In this document: positions 42,317 to 63,778 of the stretch, one piece after another | Layout: each line of letters starts with the position of its first letter | Position numbering within the stretch: position 1 is the first letter of the stretch | Sequence record: OR805295.1 | DNA length: 64,000 nt | Reading direction: 5' to 3' (one strand) | The notes under the pieces: model-generated | What the model was told of the DNA's origin: nothing | The model's input: the letters and a program-made list of their open reading frames with translations, nothing else | The model's database searches: none | Program-made: the position numbers and the translations under genes

Positions 42317-42330
42317 GTATTCGGCCATTC

Positions 42331-42371
42331 GGAATTGCGATTTAGGTTTTGGAATTCTAAATCGCAATTCC
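42331..42371. repeat. Perfect 15-bp inverted repeat
   Basis: GGAATTGCGATTTAG-11-CTAAATCGCAATTCC. Confidence 0.85.
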
Positions 42372-42592
42372 GGTTTCCAAATTCAATTTTAGGCACAAAC
42401 TCGGATCCGCATTTGCATTTTGCATTTACATTTTGTGTTCTGAGTGTATATGCAAAATGCAATCGCGCATGTTGTCGATGCATTGGCTAATCTTTTATTT
42501 TTGATAGTTTAGAAAAGATTAAGAACAGAAACTATCTGTAAATTAATAAAAATAACATTTACATTACATACACATATGCATATACTATATAC

Positions 42593-42870
42593 AAGTTATG
42601 CGCTGTTGCATACGTAAATACCTCCTATGTTGTTTAGATATGTCGATTCTGGTATAACCAGATAGACCTAAGGATGATGCTAGTGATTCCTTAGTATTGT
42701 ATATTCTAGCTGAGTATAAAGAGTAAGGGGCTTTATACAAATAACAATTCCCTAGGCAAGATATACCGCTCCGTTGTGCTGACGAGCATAATTTGCCCAG
42801 ATACAGAGCACGTGACTGGTCTGAGGAGCATTTATATCAGAAAGGCAGACTTATGTTTGCCTTTCTTTTT
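42593..42870 (+). ncRNA. Candidate ~275 nt ncRNA
   Basis: TTTACA-17-TATACT (42558-42586) and terminator at 42839-42870; no convincing ORF. Confidence 0.55.
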
Positions 42871-42889
42871 GAGCAGATATTCTCTTATT

Positions 42890-42973
42890 CACTTCCTTAT
42901 TCATTTCCTTATTCATCTCTATTTCATTTGTCACTTCCTTATTCATTTCTTTATTCATCTCTATTTCATTTGT
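42890..42973. repeat. 2 x 42-bp pyrimidine-rich direct repeat
   Basis: CACTTCCTTATTCATTTC(C/T)TTATTCATCTCTATTTCATTTGT twice. Confidence 0.9.
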
Positions 42974-42980
42974 TATTGCA

Positions 42981-43092
42981 AATAAGACTAATTCTTATTT
43001 GCGTTTGTAATTTCATTTGTTATTGTAAATAAGACTAATTCGTATTTGCATTTGCAACGAAAAAGAATATGCAAATAATAACTAATCTTATT
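42981..43092. promoter_or_regulatory. Three Fur-box-like 19-mers
   Basis: AATAAGACTAATTCTTATT, AATAAGACTAATTCGTATT, AATAATAACTAATCTTATT. Confidence 0.65.
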
Positions 43093-43267
43093 TGCATTTG
43101 CACTGCCTATTATATGGATTGGTAGCATACTTGGAAATGGATAGTAAATAAGTAGTTGATTTGTTTATAAATTTTAATTCTATATCGTACTGATTGACCT
43201 TGCTATATATAGCTCGCGCGCGTATACAAGATGGTAAAAAATAATTTAAAAATATTTTAAAAAATGC

Positions 43268-43391
43268 TTGACTTTCCATTACTACGACCTTAAAGTGCGA
43301 ACTGTAGACGCAGTGTGTAGAGCGCTACATAGTAAGCAACGCAGAAAGTAAACAAAAAATGCTTGACGCAATGCAAACTAGGCTCTACACT
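43268..43391 (+). promoter_or_regulatory. Two tandem sigma70 promoters
   Basis: TTGACT-17-TAAAGT and TTGACG-17-TACACT, each with A-tract UP element. Confidence 0.85.
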
Positions 43392-43474
43392 GTATACAAG
43401 CTTAAGGGGTAGGTGCCCCGAAAGTGTAGTAAGTAAACAACATAATCCTTCCATCAGCTACAGAGGTATACAAC

Positions 43475-44179
43475 ATGTCCGTACATATCACTCGTCAACG
43501 TACCGACAAACAACACGTCCTGGCACTGGCAATCAACGGCGTGGTCATCGGCCAGACTATGGCCACTTACACCACCCCGAGCAAGCGCACCTGGTCGGCG
43601 ACCGCCGAAGTCGAACTGGCAGACGGCACAGTCGTACAGTTCGAGCAGAAAGAAGTGTTCAGCGCGATCCGCATCACCCGCGAAATCGAGCAGGCGCTCG
43701 ACGGCAAGGAACTGGCGGCCAAGTACACCCCGGAACCGAAAGTTCCCGGGCAGAAGGGTCCGAAACCGCTCACCGACGAAAGCCGGCTCAGCAACGCGAT
43801 CGCGATCGTCAAGGCGGCCATCACCCACACCGGCTTCGACGAAGCTACCCTGGTGTTCGACGGGGTCGACAAGGCCAACTTCGAGCAGAACAGCACTTCC
43901 GTCGGCAACAAGCTGCGTCGCCTGGGCTTCGTCTTCGAACTCGGCGCCGGCAAGGCGAACAGCGGCAAGGGCTTCCTGATCAACCGCAAAGCGCAGGCCG
44001 AGGCAGAAGCTGCCGAACGCAAGGCCAAGCGCGATGCCGAGAAGAAGGAACGCGAAGAAAAAGCAGCGGCTGCCAAGCGCGAAGCTGACGAACGCAAGGC
44101 CAAGCGTGAAGCCGAACGCGCCGAAAAGGTCGCTGAAAAGAACGCAGCGATCGCTGGCGCAGCGCAGGAAAGCAAGTAA
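43475..44179 (+). CDS. Early protein with Ala/Lys/Glu-rich tail; paralog of 61748
   Basis: INGVVIGQ...FSAIRI domain; GC-rich codons; AGAGG RBS. Confidence 0.9.
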   Translation: MSVHITRQRTDKQHVLALAINGVVIGQTMATYTTPSKRTWSATAEVELADGTVVQFEQKEVFSAIRITREIEQALDGKELAAKYTPEPKVPGQKGPKPLTDESRLSNAIAIVKAAITHTGFDEATLVFDGVDKANFEQNSTSVGNKLRRLGFVFELGAGKANSGKGFLINRKAQAEAEAAERKAKRDAEKKEREEKAAAAKREADERKAKREAERAEKVAEKNAAIAGAAQESK

Positions 44180-44194
44180 TTGCCCAACTGCGCC

Positions 44195-44223
44195 GAAAGG
44201 GGGAGCTATTGCTCCCCCTTTCT
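44195..44223. terminator. Intrinsic terminator
   Basis: GAAAGGGGGAGC-tatt-GCTCCCCCTTTTC. Confidence 0.85.
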
Positions 44224-45158
44224 TCATGACCACACAATCTGTATACTACTATGTCTTTAACTATATTTTCTATATCAGCTAATTTGTATACAATAATTTG
44301 GTATTCTGCGCAAGTGACACAATGCTGTTATATAGACATAATAACACGCGACACTAATATTTTTATAACCTATCCATTTTATAATAACATATTTGTATCT
44401 AAAATTAGTTCTAATACAACACTTTAAGGAAAATATGAACACTATATTAGAGATAAGTAGTGGAATAAGAAATGACTATATAACAGTCAATAATTTTACA
44501 TATGACTACTATCTAGAGGTAAACACACCTGCGTTTTCTTTAATGATAATTATTCCGACAGTTCCTATATTAGACAATACTTGCATTACTTTTATAAAAA
44601 AGTATTAATATGAATATATTCTTTATATCAAACGGTCTATCTAATATAATATATCACAAAGATAATTTGATACAACATGATATACATATGATAGATATTG
44701 AGATTAATAATTCTACTGTTATTTGGCTTACATATTCTTTCAATATTCCTAAGGTATCATTTAAATATATTATCTAATTCATTTTCTTATTGTATGAATT
44801 GCAATTGCAAATTACTCTTATTTGTAAATGCATATAAACAATCAGTTGCTATTAAAAGTATTTGCTGTTAATATATTATATAACAGTGCAATTGATATTT
44901 TAAAATACAGTGTGCAATACATCTTACATGTATTAAAATTTGTGTGTTACTTGTTTTGCATTAATGATTAATATACCTCTCATACAGTACAAAACTCATA
45001 CTATAAACAATTTGTTCGGGCGATCGTTCTCAAAATGTATACAAGTGCGAGATGACAATCTAATTTTACTTGTTAGTTTTTATATAGAAGGTTCTAAATA
45101 TAGAAAATTTGTATATAACAACCAATGCCTTGCCAATGCCTTGAAGGGATTTTAGTAT

Positions 45159-47131
45159 ATGCAAACAACAATCGTTAATGCCCTAAAATCTATTAATGTA
45201 AAGTATTCGGATATATTTTACACAAATGGTAATTTGTGTAATACCGTTACAATACGAAATATTCGCAAAAACGGTAAATTAGATTCGGCAGAACAAATTA
45301 ATGTAGAATCAGTTGTGAGCAATTATTTGATTCAAAAAGATTTAAATTTGCCCTTTTCTATTCAATGGGCAAATAATGATTGCTGTGAAGAGTATACTAC
45401 ACTTATTCTCTTCTTCAGAAAATAGTGTATGATTAGATTAAAAAGATATGTTCAATTGCATAGCATATACAGATTGTCTTACTATGCGCACAACATACAT
45501 TTTAGCAAAACAAAGAAGATAATGCTTTACGTAGGAAACGCAGGTCCCGTACCCGTAACATGACAGTATATAGCGTTAAAATGTGCATTTTTTGCACGAT
45601 TTTGCGGGGTATGCGTTACAAGCAATACACACATACTGCTTTTAAAATGCATGCTTACATGCGCTTTGTAGGGGGTTTAAAACATGCTTAAATTAGTTAC
45701 CACTGTGCTATACAACGTCTGTGTAGCTTCGTTGATAATGATTGTGTTTGTATGTGGTATAAATTTAGTAATGTATATAGATAACAATACTGACAATAAT
45801 CCAGTTGTTATCTTTATTTCCCTTCTATCGGTTATTTGGGGCGTTGCGCGGTTAAGCTATATGTTTGTTACTATCCAATTTCAGTCCAAGAAATAAAAGT
45901 ATTGGTAACATATGATAGATAAAAACGGAAATACAGAAGACTTTGATTTTGATGATGCATGCACTATAACTGACCTGCCTGTTCCTCTTCAGCAAAAAAT
46001 ACAATCATATAAATTAAATAAAATATTGGTTATGGTTGCAATCCTTAAATATTCGAATATAAAACAAGAAATTGGATGTTTCGCTATCATATGGGATCAT
46101 ATAATAAAAATAACGGTTGAAATAAAATGCAATCCGTATGCAGAAACACACATACTCATGCATGCGCATGTATCTTCTAATTCCGATTCATGCACTCATA
46201 GCGTATTGCTGAATTACAGAAACAAATATTTACCCACTAATTATTATAATTAATATGGAAGATATTCTTAAAATTGCTAAACTAATCGGGTACGTAAACA
46301 TACATGCAAATAAACATTTTCGGTATGTTTTTAACAAAGATATGGAACATGTATGTGTTAGTGCTAAGAGTAGGACAAGTATAAACGGAATAAAATACCT
46401 TTATGTAGTAATGAATATATATTATATATATTGCCAGCAAGAAAGTGTTGCCGTTATATTAAACGAAGTAAACACCGATGAAATGCCTGTATTAGATAAT
46501 CTTTATGCTAAACTTAATGATTTAGTTACACATAAATCTATTATAAAATTTAAATATACAGAAATAACACAAGAACAAATAGATTTGTTGAATAATAGTG
46601 AAAGATATATAGTATATTTTGACGACTTTATTTTAGAATACGGAATAGCTTCGTTTTATTAATTTGAGGAATATATGAAAAAACAAACAGGATTTACAGA
46701 TTGGCCATTGATTAGTTTGGGTACAATTATTATCTTGTGTGTATGGGTATTAATTCTACAATACACAGAAATAAATGTACTAGAAGAAAAATGTAACAAA
46801 GTGGGTGGTATTTTTAATAACACCGTTTGCATACGGTCAGATGCAGTTATTAATTTAGATAAGGTAAAATAAAATGCCAAAACTTTACGTTAACAAAAAA
46901 CATGATACCATTTATCTTCAATTAGATCATTTCTCATCTAATACTGTATCTCCAATTAATTATAACGAAGATGTAGAATATGTAATTGATAGGATCCGTA
47001 GTCTGCACAAATCCGGCTTCGGATTTAGTCATATGAATACTCTACAAGAATATCTTACGGCAAGAACAGAGCAGGATAAGAAGTTTAAGCTTAAAGTAGA
47101 AGACTTCGAAGTAGTATCATTTAAGATTTAA
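45159..47131 (+). other. Run of small hypothetical genes (45159, 45684, 45912, 46255, 46675, 46874)
   Basis: Closely packed co-directional ORFs; two with hydrophobic helices. Confidence 0.65.
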
Positions 47132-47152
47132 AATTATACATAATCAAAGTAT

Positions 47153-47181
47153 TTGACATTTGATGTGTATAATAGTATAAT
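47153..47181 (+). promoter_or_regulatory. Consensus sigma70 promoter driving an ORF-less region
   Basis: TTGACA-17-TATAAT. Confidence 0.92.
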
Positions 47182-47187
47182 TTGTTC

Positions 47188-47900
47188 ATGCTGTCGTAAC
47201 AGCTACTTTGTTCCATTCACAAGCAGCTCTGTTCCATTATTGGATATTGGTAGTAGAAACTATCCCCATCGTGCCCACAGTATTGTTCTGTTAGAGACAG
47301 ATTAAAACATACAAAAGTGGGTTATTTAAATTATGATTTTGGGTGCTGAAGTATAGTCGTTAGACAAGGATATGTCTAATGTTGCAAAGGACTATGCGAA
47401 ACGTATTATATATCTTATCCGATATTAGATATGTAATAAAAGGATGAAGCTCTGGTAGAAACAGAGTGTAATTCTTGCTTGTATTTCACACGGATATACA
47501 AAAGAATATACACACCAACTTCAGCATTGATGTAAATTTTCTAGCATAGGTATATAACATCGATGTTCCGGGATTCATTGGAAACAATGAGAGAATGATG
47601 TAATCTGAGGAAAAAGGTCCCCGCCTCGTCCATATTACGAAATGGTTTTGAGTACTTATGCCCTCGTCCTATATTGGCATATGGGTTTTATATTTCTCCC
47701 GTAATTACGGGAGAATATAATTTCCTGAACCTACTTGGAAATGGACGCTTCTGCTGTGCGAAGCACAGCATCTAAGGGCCTTCACCCTTACCGCTAAGAG
47801 CAAGAGCAAAAGCAATATAATTACAAATAAGAATTAATTATTGTTTAGTTTTATCGTAATGAATATGAAGATAAAAACTAAACAATAATTCACATGTAGC
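47188..47900 (+). ncRNA. Candidate ~700 nt structured ncRNA
   Basis: No ORF >=60 aa on either strand; many stems including 47344-52/47518-26. Confidence 0.65.
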
Positions 47901-48047
47901 GTTAGCTACTGTGAATATCTACTATAGTATTAACCATATATGTATACAAGGGCATAATATGACTATTACTTGTTGACAATATGATATGTGTGTTACACTG
48001 CATAAATCAAATGTACATTACAATGTTTTGATTATTAGGAACATACT

Positions 48048-48632
48048 ATGTCATTTTCTTTGACTGCTGCTATTAATCGATACACTAGTCTAATAGAAGA
48101 AAATTTCAAAATAAATTATCTGAGGCAGTTTGAGTCAGGATATATCTCGTATAAATTACTAAGAAATAAAGCACTCCTGCATACCGAAATATCACATGGA
48201 CTTGATTACATAAAGGTAATTATTTCTTATACATATGTAGAAAATAATGTCGAATTAGATATCAAATCATCTATTGTACATTCGTATATTTCTACTACTG
48301 ATTGCTCTAAATTTAAAGTAGGAGATATAAAAACGTTTTACGATTCAGTTCCTCGTGGAAATGTTTTTAATATTAAAGAGAATACTCAAGTTAGCTGGGC
48401 AACAGCTAATATTGGAATTCACGAGAATCCGTTTAATCTTAATTATATTTCGAACAATAAGTATATTCGATTAGAAACAGGAGATATATTTGTTTGTATT
48501 AATGATAGTATGGTAAATGAACTACAAGAACATATGCATGTTCATTCTATATGTACTAACAAAACAAAGAAGTTTTATGTAAGAGAAATTGATTTAAATA
48601 TGCTACATTACAAAAAACACATTATGGAATAA
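48048..48632 (+). CDS. Hypothetical protein
   Basis: 194 aa, AGGA RBS. Confidence 0.75.
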   Translation: MSFSLTAAINRYTSLIEENFKINYLRQFESGYISYKLLRNKALLHTEISHGLDYIKVIISYTYVENNVELDIKSSIVHSYISTTDCSKFKVGDIKTFYDSVPRGNVFNIKENTQVSWATANIGIHENPFNLNYISNNKYIRLETGDIFVCINDSMVNELQEHMHVHSICTNKTKKFYVREIDLNMLHYKKHIME

Positions 48633-48635
48633 AGA

Positions 48636-49184
48636 ATGAACTACAAAGCATTAGAAGTATTTTATTTCTTTCTAGAACATTACAAGGTAAATCCAGTCGC
48701 CGACTTGGAATTTAAATTCGAACCCTCAGGTAGTGATGATCAATCTAAGCGCAAGTCATCACTGTCGTTTGTTAAACGTATTGGTGTTCTTACTCCCTCA
48801 TTCAACGAATTATACGAAGTTCAGAATCGATTCATGTCAGATCTTCGAGAAATGAATGTAGTATATAAGATAGGATTTAATTATAATGCATTCAACGTAT
48901 TAGCACCTTTGTATGCAAGATATGAAAAGAATGTAAAAGAATTTCGTCGACTTTTAAAGAAATACTCAAATTTCAACGAAGTAACAGAATATTACAAAAA
49001 AGCCAACAACATGTTACCGGACAATGTATACGAAACAATGAAGGAAGATTTTTCATTGTTTAACGACGTTACTACAAAGAGGTTATCTGAAATAAAACTT
49101 TGTTATCCTAATTGGCAAGTATGGGATTCTGAACATCCCAACTGGGAAACAATAAATCAACTTTATAAGAATGCAAAGAAATAA
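48636..49184 (+). CDS. Hypothetical protein
   Basis: 182 aa, followed by terminator near 49195. Confidence 0.8.
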   Translation: MNYKALEVFYFFLEHYKVNPVADLEFKFEPSGSDDQSKRKSSLSFVKRIGVLTPSFNELYEVQNRFMSDLREMNVVYKIGFNYNAFNVLAPLYARYEKNVKEFRRLLKKYSNFNEVTEYYKKANNMLPDNVYETMKEDFSLFNDVTTKRLSEIKLCYPNWQVWDSEHPNWETINQLYKNAKK

Positions 49185-49342
49185 TGCATATTTAGAAAGG
49201 GAATTATAATTCCCTTTCTTTTTGGATCTATATTAGCAAATGCTAATTAATCTTATTTGCACAAATTTAATCCTATTGTGTTTTCTATTTTGAAGTGCTA
49301 CATTACATGTAGTTGCATAAAACTATACACAGGAGAAATGAT

Positions 49343-49891
49343 ATGTGGGATATCAAAGATGGGGATGATATCGAAGTCGAAGCAGTTATGGATGAACGAA
49401 GCTATGAGTGGACCGGCAAGTTACGTATCATCCAATATCGGACCCTTCAATCGGCTCAGTGGCGTGTTATTATCAATATAGTAGAATTTTGGAGTCATTC
49501 TACTGAAAGTATACTGAAAGAACTTGGTATAGAAGCTAAACACATTACTAAAGGATATGCCACACTTAGTATGGTTCGTTTCCCGGATGTTGATTACCTG
49601 TTTAGTGTAACACCCGATAATGCAGATTATGTAACTGTTAACCACAGTGCAGTAGATATTTCTGACAGTTGGTTTGTTGCAAAAAACATAAAAGCAGTTA
49701 TGTATCATTTGGGATCTGAAATCCAGATCACTCCGTGGTTTGTGCGTAAAGATAGTAGCGAGACAAATTTCAATTGTATTGATCGATTAGTAGCTCTAGT
49801 AAAAGAGAATACTGATGTTGACACGTATCAGTACATCAAGGTAGGTTGTCCTGAGGACAAGTCATTTTACTTTGCGTGGATAGACAAATAA
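49343..49891 (+). CDS. Hypothetical protein
   Basis: ATG 7 nt after AGGAG. Confidence 0.75.
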   Translation: MWDIKDGDDIEVEAVMDERSYEWTGKLRIIQYRTLQSAQWRVIINIVEFWSHSTESILKELGIEAKHITKGYATLSMVRFPDVDYLFSVTPDNADYVTVNHSAVDISDSWFVAKNIKAVMYHLGSEIQITPWFVRKDSSETNFNCIDRLVALVKENTDVDTYQYIKVGCPEDKSFYFAWIDK

Positions 49892-49980
49892 TTCGTTTGC
49901 TATACGTACTAATACGTTGTATACTGTTAGTACGCATAGTAGAAGTAACACATAACGTTTTGATTTAATGGAGCCTTAAC

Positions 49981-52287
49981 ATGAGAGAAGAGTTTGAAGC
50001 CGCGATCTTCGCGGAAGTGAATAAACAGCGCGCCGCCGAAGGTGAATTTGTCCTTCAGCATCCAGAGGGGCTATTTGCCCGCGATGACGATGGTTCCTAC
50101 TTGATCCGCTGGGTCAAGAGCGCATGGTGGGCCTGGAAAGCCAGTCGTGTGGCACTGACGCCCCGGACGCCCGATGTGTGCAGCGAGTGCAATGACACCG
50201 GGAAAGTCTATGACGAAAGCGGCGCCGGTCCGTGGAGTTGCTACGCCTGTACCGATAACCCGGAGGTGATCGGCTACGCAAACGGCGATGAGTTGGACAA
50301 CATGCTGGATGACCGCACTGCTGTTCTCTCTCCAAGGAAGACCAGTTTTCACACCGTGCCAGTGTATCGACTGATCCACACCCAAAACAAAAGTTTTCAA
50401 TAAAATCGATATGGAACTGGTCCTTCAAGAAGCCGAAATTGAGGTAGTGAAATGAGCAGACTGACCGCTGAACAAGCCCGTGACATAGCGCGAGCGAAAG
50501 ACGATGTCGATGCCATCCTCAACGACATCGCCAAGGCAGCCGCAGAAGGAAAGTACGTGTACACTACCCGCGCCTATGGGTTCGGTACAGGCGGCGGACG
50601 GCGCAGCGACGCGATCCTCAAAGTGTTGCGTAGCCTCGGCTACGACTGTGCGGTGCATGCTGAGGGACGCCAGTCTGTTGACCTGTGGCTTGAAGTGAAA
50701 TGGGGAGACAAGCCATGACTAACAACCCCGGAGATTCAAAAATGATCGTAGAAAACGCCAAGCAAGCCGCCGAAGACTTCAAAACTTCCATGGCTAAGAT
50801 TTTTCCGAATTACATCGCCAGGGCGTCGGTTTCCGATAACCTTGGTCCGGCGATGACAATTTCGTTTGCGAATGTCGGTTGCGCTTCCGAAGCCCCTAAC
50901 AGCATTCTGATAAATGCGAGCGGTTACATGCGCTTTATGATGCATTTGTGTGACAATTGCGGGAATGTATTGCCAGAAGGTTCGCCGGTAGAAATTGAGC
51001 TGCTAATGTGGTCTATCCCCTATCGTTCGGAAGTAATCAAGTTCCGCAAGATCAAGGGCAAGACACCAGCCGAAGCTATGCAAAAGCTAGTCAAGTGGTT
51101 TGAAAAAACGCCGAAGCTATCCGGGGTCTGTAATGGTCTCCACGTAGGACACGCAGAATGAACATTGTGTTGGACAAATTGCTGTTTGGCGGTTTCATCG
51201 ACCAGCACCGCAATGAACTTGCCCAGCAACAACTGAATCGGTTGTTTGCCAAGTACGGTGAGCCGAAGATTGGTATCACACGGGCATGCTTTCTATCTAA
51301 GCATTACGTCCTGAAGTTCCCGATTAATGACAGGGGTGAGCGGTGCAACGATTGGGAAGGTAGCTGTTCCGGCAGCTATTTGGCACGCGGACGCTGGCTA
51401 GAAATCGGAGGCTTCATTTGCGTCATGCAAGAGCGTTTGGTTGAAGTGGATTGGAAGAACAACACCCATGCAAACTTTCCTGATTGGGTAGGCAGCATAG
51501 ATTGTGGTCAAGTCGGCTACGATAAACATGGCGTTCTGAAAGCGTATGACTTCGGGTGAAGCATGACCATCAATTTGTTTGTTGTCAACATAAAGAACGA
51601 ACCTATCCCAACCGACCACAAGTCGATACTCCGCTATCTTGGCCTTAGCCTGCACACGCAAGGCCGTCGTGTATCTGCCAAATTCAGCAGCGGTAAGTTG
51701 AAGCTGAACAACTACAACATCGAATTTTTTCACATGGCGGAGATGATTCCATGACCGACACCAACAAAATAAAAAAGCTAGCAAAACTGGACGAGATCGA
51801 CAGGCTCAGGGCAGAGCGAGACGCCGCCCTGGCCAGGGTCGTAGAGCTGGAACGCGGCAAGGTCTACGTCGAAGCCCGGCAATGCGACGAGTGCCAGCAT
51901 AGCGGGATCAACGATTCCGCCACGGGCGTGGCTGCCTGCCACGAATGCGACTGGACCGGACCAGAGCCAGAAGAGGATAAGTGCCCCGGTTGCCAGAGGG
52001 AGAATTGCATGGCCGCAGCCTGCCCGCAGTGTGGTGCCCGATATGTCCTTGTTGCCAGCGAAGAGATAGCCGCCCCTGTAGCCCAGGCTCAGCACAGCGT
52101 ACCAGAGGAATGGCGCGACATGCTGGCCGAGCTGCAATGGCATTACGAGCCGTATGACGATCACCACCACACGCCCCAGGGCTTTTACTGCCCGCGTTGT
52201 GGGAGAGAACAGGACGAAGGACACAAGCCGGGATGCAAGATAGCCGAGTTGCTCGCCACTGTCGACCTCAAAGAAGACAAGAAATAA
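49981..52287 (+). other. GC-rich gene island (49981, 50452, 50715, 51158, 51563, 51751)
   Basis: Abrupt rise in GC; overlapping co-directional ORFs; 51751 has several CxxC motifs. Confidence 0.85.
51158..51559 (+). CDS. Minimal protein-kinase-like protein
   Basis: GITR...YVLKFP...NDWE...SIDCGQVG...YDFG. Confidence 0.45.
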   Translation: MNIVLDKLLFGGFIDQHRNELAQQQLNRLFAKYGEPKIGITRACFLSKHYVLKFPINDRGERCNDWEGSCSGSYLARGRWLEIGGFICVMQERLVEVDWKNNTHANFPDWVGSIDCGQVGYDKHGVLKAYDFG

Positions 52288-52328
52288 AATTCTAAATTAC
52301 TCGAACAAACATAATAGGAGCAGCATAC

Positions 52329-52559
52329 ATGAGCCTCAAATATAACGGATATGTCTTTAACATTAGTATCCTTGGCCAAAACGAAGCTATCAGTGAATAC
52401 GCCTATCCTACCGATGATCCTGAAAGTGATAAAAAGAAAGCTTTTTTGGCTGCAATGACAAAATTCGTCGAATCGGATGATTTCGAGAAATTTACTAATC
52501 AAATGTATAACAATTTCTCGATTAATGTTCAAGCACTAGTTTCTACGGCTACGGAGTAA
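52329..52559 (+). CDS. Hypothetical protein
   Basis: AGGAG RBS, 76 aa. Confidence 0.75.
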   Translation: MSLKYNGYVFNISILGQNEAISEYAYPTDDPESDKKKAFLAAMTKFVESDDFEKFTNQMYNNFSINVQALVSTATE

Positions 52560-52761
52560 ATTTTCAATTATTATACTATTTCAGTTACTTGTATCAGCAA
52601 CAAGACTGCAGAAAATAAAGAATAATTAATTCCAGTTATTTGTTCCTGTTTTAAGTGACAATAAAGAAGGTATGACTACTTTGTCTTTGATGCTAAGTAG
52701 TAATTATCCTTACGATAACTACACACATATCAACTAGCTATTATGATAGAGGCAAAAATAA

Positions 52762-52938
52762 ATGAATATCTTAAAACATATATATTGGGCTGTGCGTTAT
52801 GGTGATTGGAATATAGGTTGGGATCCAACCTGGGGTAGCAAACCCAATGAACCTTTTATTTGGTGTAAACCGATATATTATGACGGACATCATTGCTACT
52901 TGCGAGTAGGCTACTTTTGGATAGGAGTAACATACTAA
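52762..52938 (+). CDS. Small Trp-rich protein not in the ORF track
   Basis: 58 aa MNILKHIYWAVRYGDW...YYDGHHCYLRVGYFWIGVTY. Confidence 0.65.
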   Translation: MNILKHIYWAVRYGDWNIGWDPTWGSKPNEPFIWCKPIYYDGHHCYLRVGYFWIGVTY

Positions 52939-53179
52939 CATTTACAATATATCTATAAAAGAATATATTAGTAACACAATTGTTAAATTGCAAACACTAA
53001 TTAATCTTATTTGCATTTGCTATCTTGTATAATAGAAACGACTTCTAAACATGGATATGAGATGGAAAACTTAGATAGGATCTCTGTTACAAATTTTTGA
53101 GTTAAAATACATAGTAGTTTTGCTATTATGTGTTTATAGAAGTTTAATAACAGAACTAAAACATAAAGGATTGTCTGTT

Positions 53180-54831
53180 ATGAAAAGTTACGCAAAGTTT
53201 TATGTAGGAACAAACATTTATGATGCCGAAGTGCCGGATTTAGACATAAACATGCCAGATGCAGAACTTTTCGAAGTAGCATTGCATCAAATGGCAGTAC
53301 AGTGGTCTAGCACCGCCGGGCATCCGCATCACAAGGATGCAATGCGTAAAGACGGCAAGGTAGCCCGGAGTAAAGAACGGGTGTATATTCGCGGCAACGG
53401 TTGGTCCGTTTCGTTACATAGTCCCGAATTTGTAGAAAAACACTCGGCATACCTTGCCGCAGCGGAGTGGAAACTACTAACAGATTTGCTTGTATTTGAC
53501 ACCTGCTGGAACGCTAATTAGTAATTCTCTCTACACAGGAGAACGGCAATGAATACTATCAGTGTAAGAAATATGCGTTATATTGTACGTGGTTTTGTTA
53601 CTCATGCAATTGCCCGGGGTTATTCAGTTTCCGTTTATGAAGGGGGTGATTGGGCGATCGAGAAGAGTACTTCTGTAAAAGATATTATGAATTCTATCAT
53701 GTCTACTGACAGTGATACATTCTGTATTTATAATGCAGAGAAAGTGAAGGTAGGTCATGTATATTGCATTTATTGCAATAGTGATTACGAAGTTATTGCA
53801 GATTACACCGATTCACCTCTTATGCAATCGATTCTCGTCGAAGCTCTACGCAGAGCAAATCGAATAGAAGAACTGAGCTGAGAAAAAGAAGCAGGAATTA
53901 TTCCTGCTTCTTTTGTATGTTACAAGTTAAACAAGATTAATTTGCATTTGCTATGTAATAATATTTTCTATTGAATTAAATATTACATGTGTTACTATAT
54001 GCACAATGCTGTTAAACAAAGCGATAAATTAATAGCTATGGCAAATAAATTACATATCATCTGTGCAAAATGTGGTAGCACTCTTATAAACATAAAAATA
54101 CCAAAAGTATGTGCAGATGATCCATTAAATGTAGTATATTTTTCGTGCGAAAACTGTAAGGAACTTACAGGCATATACGAATGGACAGAAACAAATAATC
54201 GCAAAGTAGTTGACGATAGGTAAGAAGTAAATGGAAGCATATACAGATTATCCTATCCTAATGATCGGCGATGTTCCGCATGAAGAAGCACCTATAAGAA
54301 AAATAATTATAAAAGGTTATGATTTTAAATATATCTGGGCAGTATACCATTATATGGATTTAATTCCTATAAGGGTTCAGATAAAACGCTGTTATGTGTA
54401 CGAAACTCCGGGTAGAGTAGGTTATGTAAAATCTATTAGAGAAGAAGTATTAAGAAAACGCAAAAAGAAACAACGTGACATATATGAATACGATACATAT
54501 CAAGATGAAGACGATTTTTGGAAAGGAATGTATTAAAATGCATAATACTCGTATTGTTGTTCGACTCAATGTTATCACTCCTATTTCAACTGCTAACGGC
54601 GTTGTAGTTGATTCAGTAGTCCGCGGGCATCGAGCAGGCATTAAGCAAGGCAAACAAATGTATCATGTTTATTCTATTCAAACAGGCGAGTATCTCGGTT
54701 TGAAATCAGAAGACGACGTAAGTGAAATTAAACCGTCTTCGTATGAAGAATTTCTTACTCCGAGAACACTTACTTCAAACGAAGTAGAACAAGTTAAATC
54801 TTCTTTCGAATGGTACGAAGCTAACATTTGA
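53180..54831 (+). other. Early-type small genes (53180, 53549, 53987 CxxC ribbon, 54231, 54538)
   Basis: RBS-bearing ORFs separated by hairpin terminators near 53884 and 54835. Confidence 0.75.
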
Positions 54832-55066
54832 TATAAAGGGGGAATAATTCCCCCTTTATTTTTCTTTTATAAACATAAATAATTCGCATTTGCACCGAAG
54901 ATGCTTTATAACGCATAAATTTACATAGCTAATACATACATATTGCTAACGTTAAAAAGCGCATTATATAGCTTATAATTGCATATTGTGCAATGCATTT
55001 GTTGGTGTTATATTAAACATGCGCAACAATCAACTATACAAAAACATTTATTATGGAGATACAACA

Positions 55067-55740
55067 ATGAAAAATACACTGTGTCTCGTTGCATTTTTGG
55101 GTCTCACAGTAATAGCTCATACTTATGCAGCAGATTCTGCAAATAAAGACGTGAGCACCCTCACTATGGAACAGGATCTAGAAACATATCTAAGCGAAGA
55201 GTTTGGATTAACAGGGAAAGTTAATTGCAATAATGCCGTTAACGGAATGTTCGAATGTGTCATGCACGACGGACAAAAGAAATACATGTTTGCATGCAAT
55301 GCAGAAGACAGTGTATGCATAGTAGTATCTGTCCCAATTAAAGGAATTCGGTTATGAAAAAAGCTCTTTCAAGTGTAATAGGTATTATTGTTCTGTTACT
55401 AGGCGTGTTTATGGTAGATAATCCTACAATAGGATTAATGCTAGGAGGGTTAGTAGGTAGTTATATTTTCAGCATAGGCGGAGTAATTCTATGTGTTATA
55501 TCGTTTATGATATTTGCACTTGCCTTTGTTGAAATGAAATGAATGATTTATTTAAGTATTTGGACATTTGTATCTATAATAGTATCGATATATCATAATA
55601 TTTTAACTATAAAAATGCATAAACAGGTACTGTTGTATAAAGATTATACTTTTTATAAGGAAAGATTAGATTTTGTCTGTAATAGTTATATATTTTTCAA
55701 TGTAATATTCTTCATTTTCATTGCATGCGTTACAAAATAG
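55067..55740 (+). other. Secreted/membrane small proteins (55067-55357 signal peptide; 55354; 55543)
   Basis: MKNTLCLVAFLGLTVIAHTYA signal-like leader, Cys pairs; hydrophobic helices. Confidence 0.65.
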
Positions 55741-55799
55741 ATCACAAAAAGTTTTAAAATTCAGTTTACAGCATGCATAGTTTTACGTATTATAAACAC

Positions 55800-56065
55800 A
55801 CAAAGCAATACAGCATAACGCATTGTAAGCAACACTAAACGGGAGACACCGTCCCGCAAGCAGCCCGCCCGCGATGTTCGCGGGCTGCGGCAAACAGGTG
55901 TACAAGGTCTAGTAACGTGGAAGGCGCAGCATACCTTTCCTTAAATCGGAAATCGGTCAATGACGTACCTGCCCCTGGACACTGCTAGACCTTGCTGCTA
56001 CAGGCGGGACAGCTACAAAGGTACACTGTATGTATCTATGCTTTACCCCGCTTTGTAGCAGGTCT
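55800..56065 (+). ncRNA. Candidate ~260 nt GC-rich structured ncRNA
   Basis: TTTACA-17-TATTAT promoter; stems 55860-88, 55903-12/55985-94, 55996-56008/56047-60. Confidence 0.6.
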
Positions 56066-56341
56066 TAAAACGGTCTACTGGCATATGCCTTAGTGCTAGT
56101 AGGAATCATTAACCTAAAACTATTATATGCTTCCTGGAGGTGAAGAGTATGCCGCCGCAGCATTAAATATACATTATGATGATGATAATTATGAATGCCG
56201 AAACACCGCTTCGATTCGTTTAAAAGACAGATGTCTGAATCGAATGTTTTTGGGCAAAAAGGTCCCTTAAATGGGATTTTTTTGCGGCTGCTAACTAGCA
56301 AACGCGAATTAATCTTATTTGCAATTTAAGAAAAATACCAG

Positions 56342-56370
56342 TTGACTGTAGCTTGCTAACATAGTACATT
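56342..56370 (+). promoter_or_regulatory. sigma70 promoter
   Basis: TTGACT-17-TACATT, 22 bp downstream of Fur-box-like element. Confidence 0.8.
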
Positions 56371-56399
56371 TAACTCATAAATCCGCAGGAGTAGCAGTT

Positions 56400-58018
56400 A
56401 TGTCGCTGAAAAAGAAACTTTTAAATTCTGTGCAGATTAAATATTTCGGCAACATTTATACTTACATTTATGATGCCGTTTATGACGTTATTTATTTCGA
56501 TAACCAGCAAATGTCTTATGCTGAATTTGAAGAGGCAGTAGACTGTAAGCTAGGAGAAGTTCTGTGAATGAATATGTCGATACACACAGAGCTAAAAGAA
56601 TACTAATAATTTCTTCTATATGTTTTTTTGTAACTGGCATTCTGGTAGGATACAGCCTAGCATCGAACTCTGAGTCTGCTTCGTTATATATGCAGTATAA
56701 AGAACTTGTAAAGTCTTGCGAAGCAGAATTGCCAAGAAATGAAAATTGTCAAGTAATCGTATATGCTATACCAACACCCGAAGTAGAAGAAGAGAAACTA
56801 GAAATACAAACAATTCTCAGAGGGGTCGAAATAAAATGAGCGTATACTGTAATTGCATAGCATGCGGTGGAGATGATCCGTATGCTGTATGTGAAAATGT
56901 GTTAATGGATATCCAAAAGCACAAATATAATACTGGTCCCAGCTGGGGGCTGGTAGTTGCGGCAGTATTGTGTTTGGTAGGAATGGGATTAGCAGGTAAC
57001 GCAGCACTATCTGATAAAAAAGAAACACCGTGCGAAACTACACAACAAAAACAAGAGGTGTATAATGAGTAACAAAACAACAGACATGCTGGTAGATGAA
57101 TTTCTGTGCGAGCGTGCATCTTTTTCTCCGTTTAGCGAAGGTGTTCATGCAGCTAAACTAGGGCAGAAATATACAGACTGTCCGTATACCAAAAACGAGC
57201 CGTATGAACGTAACGAATGGATTCGAGGACATCAAATGTGGCATGATTATTCTGTTCAACAATACAAATAATATTCAGAGGATATTATGAAGAAACTATC
57301 TATGTGCGATTTTGCCAAATGGAAGGCAAACTATTATAGCACTAATAAATCCTGTCAGCCACTCCGTCTAGGACAAGCATTTATTAACGAATTTTCCGAA
57401 CAAGGTGATATGCCTCAGCCAAATCTATATTATGAAGAAGATAATGCAACTGCTGAGCTTATCATTCTAGAAAAATACATTATATACTAAGGAAGTAGTA
57501 ATGTATCTTGCACACCTATTCGCTTTGGTCCCGTCTATGTTTGCAGTATTGATTAATGCTACCTTTATTAAATACGGTTTGGGACCTGCTGCTATAATAG
57601 TATTTATGGCCTTAGTTGTAACTGTAACAGGAATTGGGTGTATAATAGATATGATGCGTGCATTGTCTGAAGTAGACAATATTATTGATAGATAGTATTT
57701 ATACGCATAAGAGAACTTATGAAACTCAATGAAGTTACTACAATTTCCGATCTAGACAATATTCCTGTCACTGACAAATTTATAGTTGTCGGCGAAGATA
57801 TGGTAGGTCTTGCTTTTATCGATAACGATGGAAAGTTAAATGATGGATTCTTTTTTGAGTGTACTTATACTCAGAATAAGGTACAAATATTTAAAGCTGT
57901 TCAACATTTGAAAAAACAAGTAGATGAATTAAATAATTGTAATAAAGAGAAAGTTATAGCACATATCATGCGAGCTCCTGAGTTTGCATATGTTTGGGTA
58001 TACTTTGAACAAAAATAA
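56400..58018 (+). other. Operon of small hypothetical genes (56400, 56564, 56836, 57065, 57287, 57501, 57719)
   Basis: Overlapping starts and stops, RBS motifs. Confidence 0.75.
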
Positions 58019-58299
58019 TAGTTCTATATTTTTGATATATGCAAACGCAAATAATTATAATTTGCAGAATCTGTTACAAACTTTCTGTTTATATAAAATA
58101 CAATCATGCTATAATAGTTTATAATAAAAATGTAAGCATATAGCACCAAAAGAACAAAGATGAAGTTCATTCTTTGTCTAAAGATTAAGTTTGCTGAGAA
58201 TTTTGATAAGAAACTTCAACTGCTAGATATTATATCAATAGTGCATTTATCATGCATTGAACAGAAAAGAAGTACTCTTTTATCTACGAGGAAAAGCAA

Positions 58300-60387
58300 A
58301 TGAAATACAAAATCATTCTTCAAAACCGTAGCAATGGTGTTGTCGCTGAATTTTCGGTAGATAACGAAATCAATCCCGAGATCATGGATACTTCTATTAT
58401 CGTTCATGAAGGGACGTCGTATATGTATACCGGCTCGGGTGGTTCTTACTACGATACCATTTATTTTAGTGAAATATATAAGACCACTAACACGACAGAC
58501 TTGTCGTTGCTATAACAGAAAACGCTTTACAATAGCTCTAAATGTGCTATTATGTAGTTGTACATAAAACAACGCAGGAGATTATATCATGCGTAGCACA
58601 CTCGGAGTAGAACATGCATCGAGAGAAATTCTTTCTGCATGGGTCGATGTAATGCAGCAACTCAACTGTGAGCATTTCTATAGCGAACTGAAAGACAATG
58701 CAGTTCGCTTAGATTTACAGGAATATATGTATACTGAACGTCTCGTTCAGTATTATACAGATCTTCCAGTCACTAATGCTGGTTGATGCCTTCGCCGGGC
58801 GTGAACTACATTTATTAGGAAAGGGGTTTTAAGCCCCTTTCCTTTTGAATGTTAAGTGTAAGTGCAAATTAATCTTATTTACTTGTTACAATTTAGTTCT
58901 TGAATTCACACATAATAGTATGTATAGTTTTAATATATAAGATACCAACATGCGAGGTTGTAAAAATGAAACTTCATAATATGAATGGTAATATTTTTAT
59001 TCGGTTTGAAGTAGATACTTCGTCGGATAATTTTGTAGAAAAAGTTTACGAAGAAATTATGCAGCTTCCTGCAAAATTGTATTTCGAGAAGATAGAACGT
59101 AGAACTTGGTTCTGTAGCTTTTACACAGGCTACGACGAATTGGTGGAATTCGTCAATGAAATAAAAGACAGAGTTAGTTCAGAAGGTGTTTTCTTTGACA
59201 GGCCATTGCAGCTAACTCTTATCAATTCGGGCGGGGTAGAAGTAAATATTTCCGATATAGAACCGGATCTTCACTATCTCTTTGATAACGATATTACAAC
59301 TACAAAACTTATCTCTATGGAAGGATCCTGCAATATGGTAGATTTGCTCATGTGCGAATGGGTACCTATTAGCATTCGAACTTCTATTGCTAAGGCATTT
59401 ACTGACAAATTTTTATAATAAAATACCTGTTGACGCATATAGCAATATGCGCAATAATATGCACGAAAGCAAGAACAGATCCAAATAACCTTTTTATAAG
59501 AGATTATATTATGTCTAAGTATCTTTCTTTTAGCGTAAACGTAGACATGGACAACACCGGTCTGTTGAAATGGTTGCGTCCTACCACCGGTCGGCTGGAT
59601 GGATTCGAAGAGAGTGTTAAAAATTTCGTTTCTTCTTTCCGCTCAATCGAGTCGAGCCCTACGGTGTTTCAAGTTTACGATGATGATAACCAGCCGTTGC
59701 AAGTAAGCAACATGAGCTGCTTCTTCCGATACTTTCCGGTGTACGGTATGTGCCTTGCACCGGGTTCGATGGTCAGGGAACAATATCGTCGGGAGATCCT
59801 CGACTATACTACTGACGAGTTCTGTTCATTCAGTAACTACTTCAGTGACGGCAAGGCCATCCGCGGCGGGGCAGTCTTGTGGTGGGATGTAGAGAAAGAC
59901 TTGGTATGGTCTGTTAGTCCCGAATTGATTCGCCTCGTATATGCCCGCTTGCAAAGTGATATGGACATCGGGTGGTATCATCTCGGGCAAGAAGTTATGG
60001 CTGTAGTTCCCCTTCGTTCTTATCCCAACGATGTTGCCCGATGGAAATATGTACAAGGTAATATCTGCGGCATCGACGATCAAGTGAGCATTCGCAGCAA
60101 TGTCGACGGTCGAGTCACCCGGCTTAATTGGGAATACATCGTTACCCAAGGGGGATAATATGGGCGGTCTTGCTAATATAGTTGCATGCATAGCTTCTAT
60201 TGTTGCAATTGTTACTGGAAATATCTGGTATTTTATCGCACTGTTGCTATGCACAGCATTTATGTCGCCCGAACGAAAAGGATCATTAATTGATGTATTT
60301 TCGGTCATTGTCGGGATTGGTGCTATATTTAACGGAGACATTGTATGGGGCATAGTGTTCATAGCATTAGTGATAATAGTTAAATAG
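58300..60387 (+). other. Early-type cassettes (58300, 58589, 58966, 59511, 60160)
   Basis: Promoters near 58526 and 59430 (TTGACG-17-AATAAT); terminators near 58818 and 60388. Confidence 0.7.
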
Positions 60388-60430
60388 AAAGGAAGGGGTT
60401 TAACCCCCTTCCTTTTATTGTAGGTGTTAA

Positions 60431-60580
60431 ATGTCATCAATTTTTTATCTTAGCAAATCAACAGAATACATAGTAATTTTAAACAATACAAGAATAAGGT
60501 TAAGTACAGCGAAATATTCTATAGGATATGTATCACTAGAAACACCTCGTCGCACATTTTACTGGACACTTTTTAAATGA
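60431..60580 (+). CDS. Outlying single-unit ILxLQ family micro-ORF
   Basis: MSSIFYLSKSTEYIVI, 49 aa. Confidence 0.55.
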   Translation: MSSIFYLSKSTEYIVILNNTRIRLSTAKYSIGYVSLETPRRTFYWTLFK

Positions 60581-61169
60581 AATACAATAATCGTATCTAA
60601 ATAGCTACCTACCTTTATATCAAAAACCATTCTATGAAATATATTTCCCAAATCATATTACAAAAGTTATATTTGAATTTTGGATTCTTATCTCAACCTT
60701 GCATTGCAATATAAAATGCGAATATGAGTGTGCTGTATGTGTTTGCATACGCATGTACATACGCATAAACGTATTAAGAAATACAATTTATTTTATCCTA
60801 TACGATTATCTTTAATACCTATATGTTGTTTGATAATAAAAGTATAATAAGTAAAAGACATTATCCATTGTATAATGGTTTTAATATATTTCGCTGTAGT
60901 GTCGGATGTATATATTTTTCATATGATAAAATGTCATTTATTCACGACATATTCATGCAAACCATTTCGTTGTTCCTTACGACGTTATTATTGTTTTTAC
61001 TTATAACTCCTTTATATTATATAGGATTGAAAAATCCAGTCAATATAACTACATTTGTTTCGTGTTTAATAATAACTATTCTTATAACAAGTTATTATTT
61101 TATGTCAGTTTTGACTTATATATTCTGTATTACCGTTCAGTCAATAATTTATAAAAGAAAGAAATAATT

Positions 61170-61280
61170 TAGTTTCTTTTTCATTATCAATATCTTTTTC
61201 TTTTTCAATATCTTTTTCTTTATCTTTTTCTTTTTCAATATCTTTTTCTTTATCTTTTTCTTTATCTTTATCTTTTATCA
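61170..61280. repeat. Pyrimidine-rich low-complexity repeat
   Basis: TCTTTTTCTTT and CAATATCTTTTTC units; minus strand reads KDKEKDIEKE. Confidence 0.85.
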
Positions 61281-61291
61281 TTGCAAATACA

Positions 61292-61396
61292 AATAATAAT
61301 TATTCTTATTTGCATTTAGTGATGTAAATAATTCTTATTTGTAATTGCGATTAATTCTTATTTGCTACAATAGATAGAATAAGAATAATTCACATT
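61292..61396. promoter_or_regulatory. Four tandem Fur-box-like 19-mers
   Basis: AATAATAATTATTCTTATT, GATGTAAATAATTCTTATT, ATTGCGATTAATTCTTATT, AATAAGAATAATTCACATT. Confidence 0.7.
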
Positions 61397-61686
61397 TGCA
61401 ATGCCGCTAAAAGCGCTGTAAGCGCTGTATGTTGCGTAGTAGTGCTAAGCAATGCGTTAGTACAGCTACGCGCACAAACGCTGTTATGCGCGCTTGTAGC
61501 GCGTTTTAGGGCCCATGCGCATGCGTATACCTGTAGCTTTACATAGTAAAATGCAGAAAAGACGTCGTCTATTAACGTGCCTGTCTTAATAGAAATATAC
61601 AATTGTACAATACCTGCGAAATCCTACACACTACAGACATGCAAACAAGCAATGTGCTTGCAAGCATAAAAGTTTTTAAAAAGTAG

Positions 61687-61715
61687 TAGACACAGTGTAG
61701 CATCCCTAGTAAGCT
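61687..61715 (+). promoter_or_regulatory. sigma70 promoter
   Basis: TAGACA-17-TAAGCT. Confidence 0.7.
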
Positions 61716-61747
61716 ACACACATAAACAACACAACGGAGTACAAGCT

Positions 61748-62215
61748 ATGTCTAATGTAAGCATCCCTGCAGTAACGGTAGAGAACATCGGCACCCTGCG
61801 CATCGTGCGCACCGCTAACAAGGAGGTCGGAAGTGTGCTCGACCTAAAAGTTAACGGGGTAGTAGTAGGGCAAGCTTTCCCGCTCTACAGCACAAAAACC
61901 CAGCGTAGCTGGAACGCGAGCATGCACGCTACCGTTAACGGTGTAGAGGTGCAGTTTGCACAGGAAGGCGTGTTCAGTGCAATCCGCATTGCACGGGCGT
62001 TCGAGGATGCAGTAAAGTATGCCGTTAGCAACGGCGAACAAGGGCAACCCCTCCCCGCGCCGGCGGCGCAGACCGATGCCCCGGCAACGGCAGAAGCGCA
62101 AGCAGAAGCCCCGGCGGCGCAGACCGAGGATGCGCCGGAGACCCCGGCGGCCGAAGCTAAGCCCGCCCGCAAAGGCGGCAGCAAAGGCAGCAGCAAAGGC
62201 GGCAGCAAAAAGTAA
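61748..62215 (+). CDS. Early protein with Ala/Pro/Lys-rich tail; paralog of 43475
   Basis: VNGVVVGQ...FSAIRI domain. Confidence 0.9.
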   Translation: MSNVSIPAVTVENIGTLRIVRTANKEVGSVLDLKVNGVVVGQAFPLYSTKTQRSWNASMHATVNGVEVQFAQEGVFSAIRIARAFEDAVKYAVSNGEQGQPLPAPAAQTDAPATAEAQAEAPAAQTEDAPETPAAEAKPARKGGSKGSSKGGSKK

Positions 62216-62228
62216 GCGCTGCTAACAC

Positions 62229-62254
62229 AGGAAAGGGGCAACTGCCCCTTTCCT
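62229..62254. terminator. Intrinsic terminator
   Basis: AGGAAAGGGGC-aact-GCCCCTTTCCT; exact reverse complement at 62947-62972. Confidence 0.85.
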
Positions 62255-62383
62255 TTTATGTCCTAGTTGTAAATGCAAATTAATCTTATTTGCATTTGCA
62301 CAAGTCAATCTCCTGTTGCATTACTGCGGCAAGATGTTAGTATGTGCTTGGCAGTAACACATAACTAGCAGGAGCAACAGACA

Positions 62384-63710: not shown

Positions 63711-63778
63711 GTTCTAAGATTAGTTCTTATTTGCAATGATAATATTCCCGCCTTACAAATAAGAACTAATCTTAGAAC
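63711..63778. repeat. Perfect 23-bp inverted repeat of Fur-box-like elements
   Basis: GTTCTAAGATTAGTTCTTATTTG-22-CAAATAAGAACTAATCTTAGAAC. Confidence 0.9.

Follow-up and report, generated by a model that had tools for sequence, protein, structure and literature searches.

Predicted Fur-type operators arrayed across the early region of the lytic jumbo phage Paride

We report the analysis of a 64,000-nucleotide (nt) stretch of sequence record OR805295.1, referred to below as the window, which coincides, with 100% identity, with record positions 124001-188000 of Pseudomonas phage Paride. This virulent jumbo phage has a genome of 287 kb and belongs to the PA5oct group, 10 relatives being 95-97% identical to it. 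Two composite modules lie in the window, each made up, in the same order, of a repeat tract, a cluster of three or four dyad boxes, a spacer, one or two promoters, a gene of a paralogous family and a terminator. This arrangement had been proposed in a prediction made from the letters of the sequence (the original prediction, in the following), and all elements were indeed found where it had placed them. The boxes are part of a set of about 30 sites in the phage genome and, as far as their sequence can tell, are probably binding sites for the Fur protein of the host, in which case the modules would be extended Fur operators, acting as DNA and not as RNA.

Two modules and a family of dyad boxes

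The elements of the two modules, and the single box following the second one, are listed below in window coordinates.

42866-42975, no strand: tract 1, a T-rich minisatellite with periods 12 and 42, containing two 42-nt units (Tandem Repeats Finder)
42978-43002, 43025-43049 and 43071-43095, no strand: three-box cluster of module 1, spacing 47 and 46 nt, scoring 30-32 with a position weight matrix (PWM)
43268-43296 (TTGACT-17-TAAAGT) and 43363-43391 (TTGACG-17-TACACT), plus strand: two sigma-70-type promoters of module 1, each 9/12 in the promoter scan
43475-44179, plus strand: gene of paralog A (234 amino acids, aa), corresponding to PA5oct gp38, which mass spectrometry places in the virion
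44199-44226, plus strand: paralog A terminator, a GC-rich hairpin at which RNA depth falls about 250-fold
61173-61281, no strand: tract 2, a T-rich, G-free minisatellite with periods 12, 18 and 30 (Tandem Repeats Finder)
61289-61313, 61318-61342, 61341-61365 and 61375-61399, no strand: four-box cluster of module 2, found with the PWM
61687-61715 (TAGACA-17-TAAGCT), plus strand: putative promoter of module 2, proposed from the sequence, behind an A/T-rich upstream stretch
61748-62215, plus strand: gene of paralog B (155 aa), whose N-domain, shared with paralog A, is followed by an acidic/Pro/Ala linker and a basic KGS-repeat tail
62229-62254, plus strand: paralog B terminator, a GC-rich hairpin
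62269-62293, no strand: single box, 13 nt past the paralog B terminator, a typical single-box junction

The relationship between the two genes resides in the N-terminal domain, which is 48% identical along 61 aa (E 3e-16). At the DNA level, likeness between the modules is limited to the boxes, the composition of the tracts and the coding N-domain, the spacers being non-homologous. Both copies of the module are real, but they do not form a unique pair: they are the box-clustered, tract-bearing, most elaborate members of a set of about 30 terminator-box-promoter junctions.

The box consensus is a 25-bp dyad, GCAAAY-NN-GAAT-N-ATTC-NN-RTTTGC, which becomes a perfect palindrome at 42978-43002. The PWM, derived from the window's own sites and then run over the whole 287-kb genome, selected about 30 sites, all within record positions 166976-193611 (26.6 kb, corresponding to window 42976 to 69611 in extended coordinates), as opposed to only 1-2 weak matches in the other 260 kb. 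Further boxes of the window, contained in 44801-63846, are given here by the start of the 29-nt PWM window; beyond them, the series runs past the window end to record 193611.

44799, 47821, 49234, 52988, 54867, 56296, 58039: further boxes
58856, 62987, 63528, 63566, 63708, 63753, 63820: further boxes (continued)

Comparable numbers, 28-30 boxes in preserved order, are found in PA5oct, MIJ3, Callisto and Ettore, and the cluster of module 1 is conserved in 5 phages. Seven plus-strand terminators within 44.4-64 kb are followed by a box 8-19 nt downstream, and the orientation of the boxes tracks the direction of transcription. The distance from box to candidate promoter is variable, from 20 to 300 nt, most single boxes lying 20-100 nt upstream; on this account, a role of the box as a core promoter element was rejected. 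On inspection, the boxes also appear to lack the -24 GG of sigma-54 promoters and a fixed MotA-like position. Overlap between box and promoter is confined to 52988, 58039 and the viral contig L020 described below. The best such case, at 58032-58065, features a box exactly over a strong promoter-like site, TTGATA-18-TATAAT (11/12), and may be regarded as a candidate for classic Fur repression.

Likeness of boxes and tracts to Fur operators

The phage-derived dyad was scanned over one genome for each of 185,579 prokaryotic species and hit 28 loci, about 15 of which are single intergenic sites in GC-rich proteobacteria. Beside these proteobacterial sites lie genes for two TonB-dependent receptors and for five substrate-binding proteins, all five from a single family; two of the five were compared, and match solved FbpA structures (E 1e-92 and 1e-97). 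The presence of FbpA-family and TonB-receptor genes beside the sites points to a Fur regulon, and the phage pattern is thus identical to an operator type that precedes bacterial iron-uptake genes. The Bacteroidota loci of the same scan (about 10) were discarded as a coding palindrome, unrelated to Fur.

Direct comparison gave a similar picture. The phage boxes resemble both the Xanthomonas Fur consensus, AATGAgAATcATTctCATT (PMC1790865), and the Fur 25-mers of A. baumannii (PMC3055841), the consensus sequences scored being those of Xanthomonas and E. coli. Against the Xanthomonas consensus the boxes score 11-16/18, with a mean of 13.5 (13-15/18 for those of module 1), as compared to a mean of 9.1 and a 99th percentile of 12 in AT-rich random windows; accepted sites in Xanthomonas are at the level of 15-17/19. 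In the whole phage genome 6 sites reach at least 15/18, and all 6 fall inside the box region. These matches, along with the sites beside FbpA and TonB-receptor genes, are in favor of the name of Fur-like boxes given in the original prediction. PvdS-dependent iron-starvation promoters (TAAAT-N16-CGT) were also considered and rejected, 1 site being found in the region as compared to 0.9 expected. A literature search with the box sequence returned only primers and unrelated matches.

The motif is also found outside the close relatives of Paride. The composite arrangement, whose synteny in relatives the original prediction proposed as a check, recurs in two distant metagenomic relatives of 47-48% GC, L014 and L017, where a four-box cluster precedes a homolog of paralog B with about 30-35% protein identity; the box motif is unchanged in these contigs, whose paralogs are 30-45% identical. 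Searching cultured phages by BLAST with the box cluster retrieved the PA5oct group only, and viral contigs, when searched for related loci, yielded nothing. Boxes of this type are, however, clustered against a TTGACA promoter, in a divergent early promoter region, at 3000-3180 of L020, a podovirus-like IMG/VR contig which shares no protein with Paride and is related by its primase to Pelagibacter and Roseobacter phages. Together with the unchanged motif of L014 and L017, this cluster suggests a factor whose conservation reaches beyond the PA5oct group. The occurrence of the same boxes in an unrelated phage favors a host factor over a phage factor as their ligand, and suggests that clusters of Fur boxes in lytic phages may be more widespread.

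The two tracts are tandem repeats, as originally described, with 77% pyrimidine and 5 G in tract 1, and 84% pyrimidine and no G in tract 2, which includes the most pyrimidine-rich 80-nt window of the genome. When read on the minus strand, tract 1 is a 12-nt periodic array of AATGAATAA-type units resembling Fur half-sites, and tract 2 is a succession of GATAAA, GAAAAA, GATATT and GATAAT hexamers, all in phase. A Fur operator is classically described, besides as a dyad, as an array of GATAAT hexamers, a model reportedly put forward by Escolar et al. in 1998. Compared to (GATAAT)12, tract 2 matches at 55/72 positions, the best value of the genome (mean 22, standard deviation 4.3, z about 7.8; next-best 43), and tract 1, with 39/72, is among the top ten. 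In L017 and in another distant relative, L012, the best GATAAT-type array of each locus coincides with the position of the tract.

Tract length varies even between near-identical phages: tract 1 has 42 additional nt in PA5oct and MIJ3, and tract 2 shows differences of -12, -24 and -36 nt; for both tracts the changes are always multiples of six. Only about 40 nt of tract are present in L014 and L017. We read the tracts as expandable extensions of the predicted Fur operator. Upstream of the promoter of the non-coding RNA described below, at 42332-42470, a 41-nt palindrome is found together with inverted arrays of GCATTT/ATTTGC, the outer hexamer of the box; the arrangement is similar to that at 2400-2560 of L012, and the hexamer arrays may be another array of Fur type.

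Transcription, gene cassettes and paralogous genes

Transcription was evaluated for module 1 only, by mapping to 42300-44400 the contigs of 4 RNA runs, apparently from a PA5oct infection series in LB medium. These contigs are unstranded and cannot prove absence of a transcript, and LB is iron-replete, a condition in which a Fur-repressed promoter would be off. Two features lie just to the left of the module.

42584-42867, plus strand: non-coding RNA (ncRNA), homolog of PA5oct ncRNA001 (PA5oct annotation), contig depth about 1e6, ending just before module 1
42841-42870, plus strand: intrinsic terminator of this ncRNA, AAAGGCA...TGCCTTT followed by a T run, at which depth falls from 2.5e5 to 160 or less

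The ncRNA, which accounts for 2.4-5% of phage reads in PA5oct (PA5oct paper table), is conserved in L012 and has no Rfam family; it is context, lying outside the predicted Fur platform. PA5oct ncRNA002, which maps to about 55816-56266, likewise ends just before a box. From 42868 to 43293, including tract, boxes and spacer of module 1, the summed depth is 0-300 (0-160 over the tract in all 4 runs), and rises to 2e3-6e5 over the gene of paralog A, beginning at about 43300 and lasting up to its terminator at 44.2 kb. The contigs start at 43294-43384, that is roughly 43300-43400, at the two TTGAC-17-TAnnnT sites, the second of which (43363-43391) is conserved in L012; the boxes thus lie 200-330 nt upstream of the RNA start. 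A near-untranscribed segment of tract and boxes, followed by a gene strongly expressed in iron-replete medium, speaks against a sponge RNA made in abundance, and equally against the main promoters being simply repressed by Fur. The strong sigma-70 promoters of the original prediction have therefore to be taken with caution: those of module 1 agree with RNA starts, but the site of module 2, although a similar one is kept in L014, falls below the scan threshold, and promoter-like matches occur in this AT-rich DNA at chance frequency, so that their strength is unproven.

DNA matching the box region lies within the 39-kb terminal repeat of PA5oct, which contains many highly transcribed early genes (PA5oct paper and annotation), and should therefore be present in two copies per virion DNA. 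Comparison of closely related phages reveals gain and loss of gene cassettes in this region. Callisto lacks 63014-63719, both ends of the missing segment lying in boxes; in Paride and MIJ3 identical boxes enclose an additional cassette, 64242-64704; in Callisto and Ettore copies of 62231-62343 enclose another, of about 765 nt. Other cassette breakpoints, at 50.0-52.8 kb, are not at boxes. Two repeat families, D7 and D13, link the terminator tail to the box. Taken together, the spacing between terminators and boxes and the cassette indels ending in boxes depict the region as a series of cassettes of early genes, with terminator-box-promoter junctions between them. The GC content across these cassettes is 27-54%. 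Those at 49980-52800 and 62300-63000, with 50-54% GC inside a genome of 27-33% GC, vary in gene content among phages which are 96-97% identical, and look like recently acquired or exchanged genes.

In paralog A, a beta-sheet N-domain is combined with an alpha/beta domain in the middle and a long helix rich in K and E. A third member of the family, preceded by one box, lies outside the window.

Record 192142-192603, plus strand: third paralog (153 aa)

A word-based homolog search with the paralogs found PA5oct proteins only, and an exhaustive profile search extended the family to 18 members, none of them annotated. No match was found in Pfam or PHROGs. AlphaFold models of A and B are confident (pLDDT 89 and 86) and feature five strands and a helix, followed by disordered or helical basic tails; Foldseek searches with these models against PDB and AFDB gave a best E of 6e-3 and TM below 0.3, and the ESM Atlas offered no clue. 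A 12-nt repeat (62169-62209) of variable copy number codes for the KGGS tail of paralog B, Callisto having 12 additional nt.

Some annotations may be corrected. Around the modules, the PA5oct annotation reports ncRNA001 to the left of module 1, an "extensin-like" coding sequence (CDS) on tract 1 and a minus-strand "FtsH" micro-CDS on tract 2, both micro-genes overlying tract repeats. Two Paride genes are in the wrong frame or strand: Paride_0306 (43363-44088) is a TTG-start open reading frame (ORF) in a frame other than that of PA5oct gp38, homologs backing the 43475-44179 frame, and Paride_0391 (minus strand, record 192043-192465) is annotated where the third paralog (plus strand, L004 4142-4603, 153 aa) was missed.

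The phage also encodes iron-dependent enzymes, a ribonucleotide reductase and a QueE-like radical-SAM protein; a Pfam search of the other early proteins found no family, and no link to iron comes from them. A complex array of 39-67-nt tandem repeats at 34040-34510, the place to which the start of the PA5oct terminal repeat (coordinate 1) corresponds, may mark the physical genome end. Twelve tRNA genes are clustered at 14833-19043, as in PA5oct, and tRNAs were the only hits of an Rfam scan of the window.

Competing explanations and known systems

Binding of the boxes by host Fur is the explanation that we favor. An extended Fur operator would be formed by an array of GATAAT-type hexamers and 3-4 dyad boxes, and would precede, by 170-450 bp, the promoters of a small gene family that is specific to phages; in PA5oct-like phages the junctions would separate the early cassettes of the terminal-repeat region, and Fur-Fe2+, by occupying the untranscribed gaps, would tie the early region of the phage to the iron status of the host. 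That P. aeruginosa Fur binds the boxes, and what would follow from binding, we infer from the likeness of the sites to known operators. Since most boxes are off active promoters, and expression of the region is strong in iron-replete LB, promoter occlusion of the classic kind is less likely. Among the possible consequences of binding we prefer, though with less than even confidence, a modulation of the cassette promoters from upstream, by spreading, counter-silencing or insulation, as at upstream Fur sites such as E. coli ftnA, which would make early expression iron-dependent.

Several observations weigh against Fur. Many boxes match the Xanthomonas consensus at only 12-14/18, and the match to the E. 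coli 19-mer, GATAATGATAATCATTATC, is weak (10.5/18, with individual scores of 10-14/19); this last test understated the resemblance, since the Xanthomonas consensus is itself just 10/19 to the E. coli string (PMC1790865). Most boxes are upstream of promoters and not over them, which is atypical of Fur repression, and the constant distance between box and terminator finds no explanation in regulation. L012, which has a homolog of paralog A, features the tract, but no standard box in 10 kb, and a low-complexity (GAWAAA)n repeat could mimic GATAAT arrays through composition alone. Finally, no iron genes are highlighted among the host responses in the text of the PA5oct omics paper, as distinct from its table of 698 genes.

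Two alternatives accept the dyads as protein-binding sites, while assigning them a different ligand or a different effect. The ligand could be a dimeric DNA-binding protein encoded by the phage, the boxes being merely Fur-like and the paralog family, autoregulated, being the candidate. The largest clusters do precede paralog genes, as autoregulation would require, and a sheet-plus-helix N-domain along with a basic tail is found in the paralogs; however, these proteins match no DNA-binding family or fold, they diverge to 30-45% identity while the motif stays constant, and the motif is also present in a phage contig sharing no protein with Paride and before bacterial iron genes, all of which makes this alternative quite improbable. 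As to the effect, boxes and arrays might leave phage genes unregulated and act as a sink, soaking up host Fur after replication and derepressing both host iron uptake and the iron-sparing response to the advantage of the phage, as in a natural Fur titration assay. In line with this, near-consensus sites are many and occupy the sole gaps left untranscribed within a region of dense transcription, the arrays tolerate changes in copy number, the location in the terminal repeat doubles the sites per virion DNA, and the phage itself encodes iron-dependent enzymes. Sites oriented with transcription, and clusters tied to one gene family across distant relatives, look instead regulatory. Moreover, at low multiplicity of infection the sites would presumably be few until late in the 40-min cycle, according to simple arithmetic based on Fur abundance; nor does the PA5oct paper highlight a host iron response. 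We regard a sink as unlikely.

Three further alternatives were considered. The junctions could chiefly be recombination modules, or mobile regulatory cassettes, serving gain and loss of early cassettes, with the tracts as by-products of slippage: the cassette indels of Callisto, Paride/MIJ3 and Callisto/Ettore are bounded by boxes or junction copies, the D7 and D13 families join terminator tail and box, and cassettes differ widely in GC content. Any repeat would, however, do for this purpose, which leaves dyad symmetry, match to Fur operators and conservation of the motif at 47-48% GC unexplained, and the breakpoints at 50.0-52.8 kb are away from boxes; as the chief role it appears doubtful, and as a second role it is compatible with Fur binding. 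An AT-rich repeat array, followed by 3-4 spaced repeats and a small gene, is also the layout of iteron origins of replication, in which the boxes would be iterons, the T-rich 12-mers a DNA-unwinding element and the adjacent gene an initiator; in favor of this we count the likeness of tract 2 units to the E. coli 13-mer, GATCTnTTnTTTT. This is very unlikely, given about 25 more single boxes over 26 kb, two or three such loci in one genome, a cumulative GC skew with no turning point at these loci and paralogs matching no initiator family. Last, the original prediction had suggested that the minus strand of the tracts might produce A-rich RNAs able to sponge Hfq/Crc, or small charged peptides; such K/E/D-rich micro-peptides or Hfq/Crc-binding RNAs might be made perhaps only on release of Fur under iron limitation, the RNA data coming from iron-replete LB only. 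A-rich ARN and AAnAAnAA repeats are indeed present in the minus strand of both tracts, as a property of the DNA, and minus-strand promoter-like sites face the two tracts, at 43137-43109 (10/12) and, inside the boxes, at 61328-61299 (10/12), but such matches are at chance frequency here, and the unstranded LB contigs reach a depth of 0-160 over tract 1 as compared to 1e6 next door. As to the peptides, ORFs of 35 and 46 aa exist, the second being the "FtsH" of the PA5oct annotators; neither has a Shine-Dalgarno sequence, before 42958 or 61281 respectively, nor an equivalent in L012, L014 and L017, and both are located in repeats whose copy number differs between near-identical phages. Peptides are thus not supported, and a minus-strand product of either kind is very unlikely.

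If Fur binds, infection by these phages, which are candidates for therapy, should depend on iron, which is scarce in infected tissue and biofilms; under the sink alternative, the phage would rewire the iron response of the host. Paride replicates in dormant, starved P. aeruginosa, and the array could therefore help PA5oct-like phages to read host physiology. A high-capacity Fur-binding array, made of about 30 dyads and of hexamer arrays and doubled by the terminal repeat, serving either iron gating of the early programme or as a natural Fur sponge, by which the iron-starvation response of the host would be derepressed during infection, is a possibility that we would advance with considerable reserve.

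No report of a comparable Fur-box array in a lytic phage was found in the literature searches, and iron and Fur go unmentioned in both the PA5oct omics paper and the Paride paper. This suggests that a dense, conserved array of predicted Fur boxes, extending over the early genes of a jumbo phage with a strictly lytic life cycle, is new, single boxes on accessory operons of temperate phages being already known. The phage boxes share with proteobacterial Fur boxes (PMC1790865, PMC3055841) the 9-1-9 dyad, with half-site AATGnGAAT / ATTCTnATT and outer GCAAAT/ATTTGC hexamers. As in Fur operators, arrays of GATAAT-like hexamers adjoin the dyads, and the same pattern is found before fbpA and TonB-receptor genes. 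They differ from known Fur boxes in their number, about 30 in 26 kb of a virulent phage, and in their position, mostly upstream of promoters and just past terminators, binding of Fur being predicted for them.

On temperate phages, stx1 is a Fur-regulated accessory gene. The sitABCD operon, on lambdoid phages, is likewise made up of Fur-regulated accessory genes of temperate phages (PMC6969025). In these systems, as in Paride, boxes of the host Fur type are found on phage DNA, and phage-borne genes join the host iron regulon, as is predicted for those of Paride; there, however, single boxes lie over the promoter of one accessory operon, expressed from the prophage, whereas the array of Paride, a jumbo phage that is strictly lytic, covers the early region.

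A minus-strand transcript of the tracts would resemble CrcZ-type Hfq/Crc sponges in its A-rich, ARN-like repeats; unlike for these, no appreciable transcript was seen over tract and boxes of module 1, and the sequence is unrelated to known Rfam families. Upstream Fur sites reportedly counter H-NS silencing at E. coli ftnA, as described by Nandal et al. in 2010. By way of analogy only, module 1 similarly features several Fur-type boxes well upstream of an AT-rich promoter active in replete iron; silencing by MvaT/MvaU, and activation, would be hypothetical in Paride.

The organization of the junctions recalls the PeSLs, said by Arbiol, Comeau, Krisch et al. in 2010 to be mobile regulatory cassettes of T4-type phages. 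In both cases a repeated stem-loop with an early-promoter element lies between small early ORFs, in a plastic region where cassettes are gained and lost at the repeats, and three cassette indels of the Paride group end in boxes; PeSLs have no transcription-factor dyad, whereas in Paride a Fur-type box is placed between terminator and promoter. As to the use of host regulators, lytic cyanophages carry sites for nutrient regulators of the host, such as PhoB (pho boxes) and NtcA, which tune their own genes. Paride is predicted to be a further lytic phage exploiting the sites of a regulator that responds to the nutrient status of the host; cyanophages differ in the regulator and in the nutrient, have far fewer sites per genome and feature neither hexamer arrays nor clusters.

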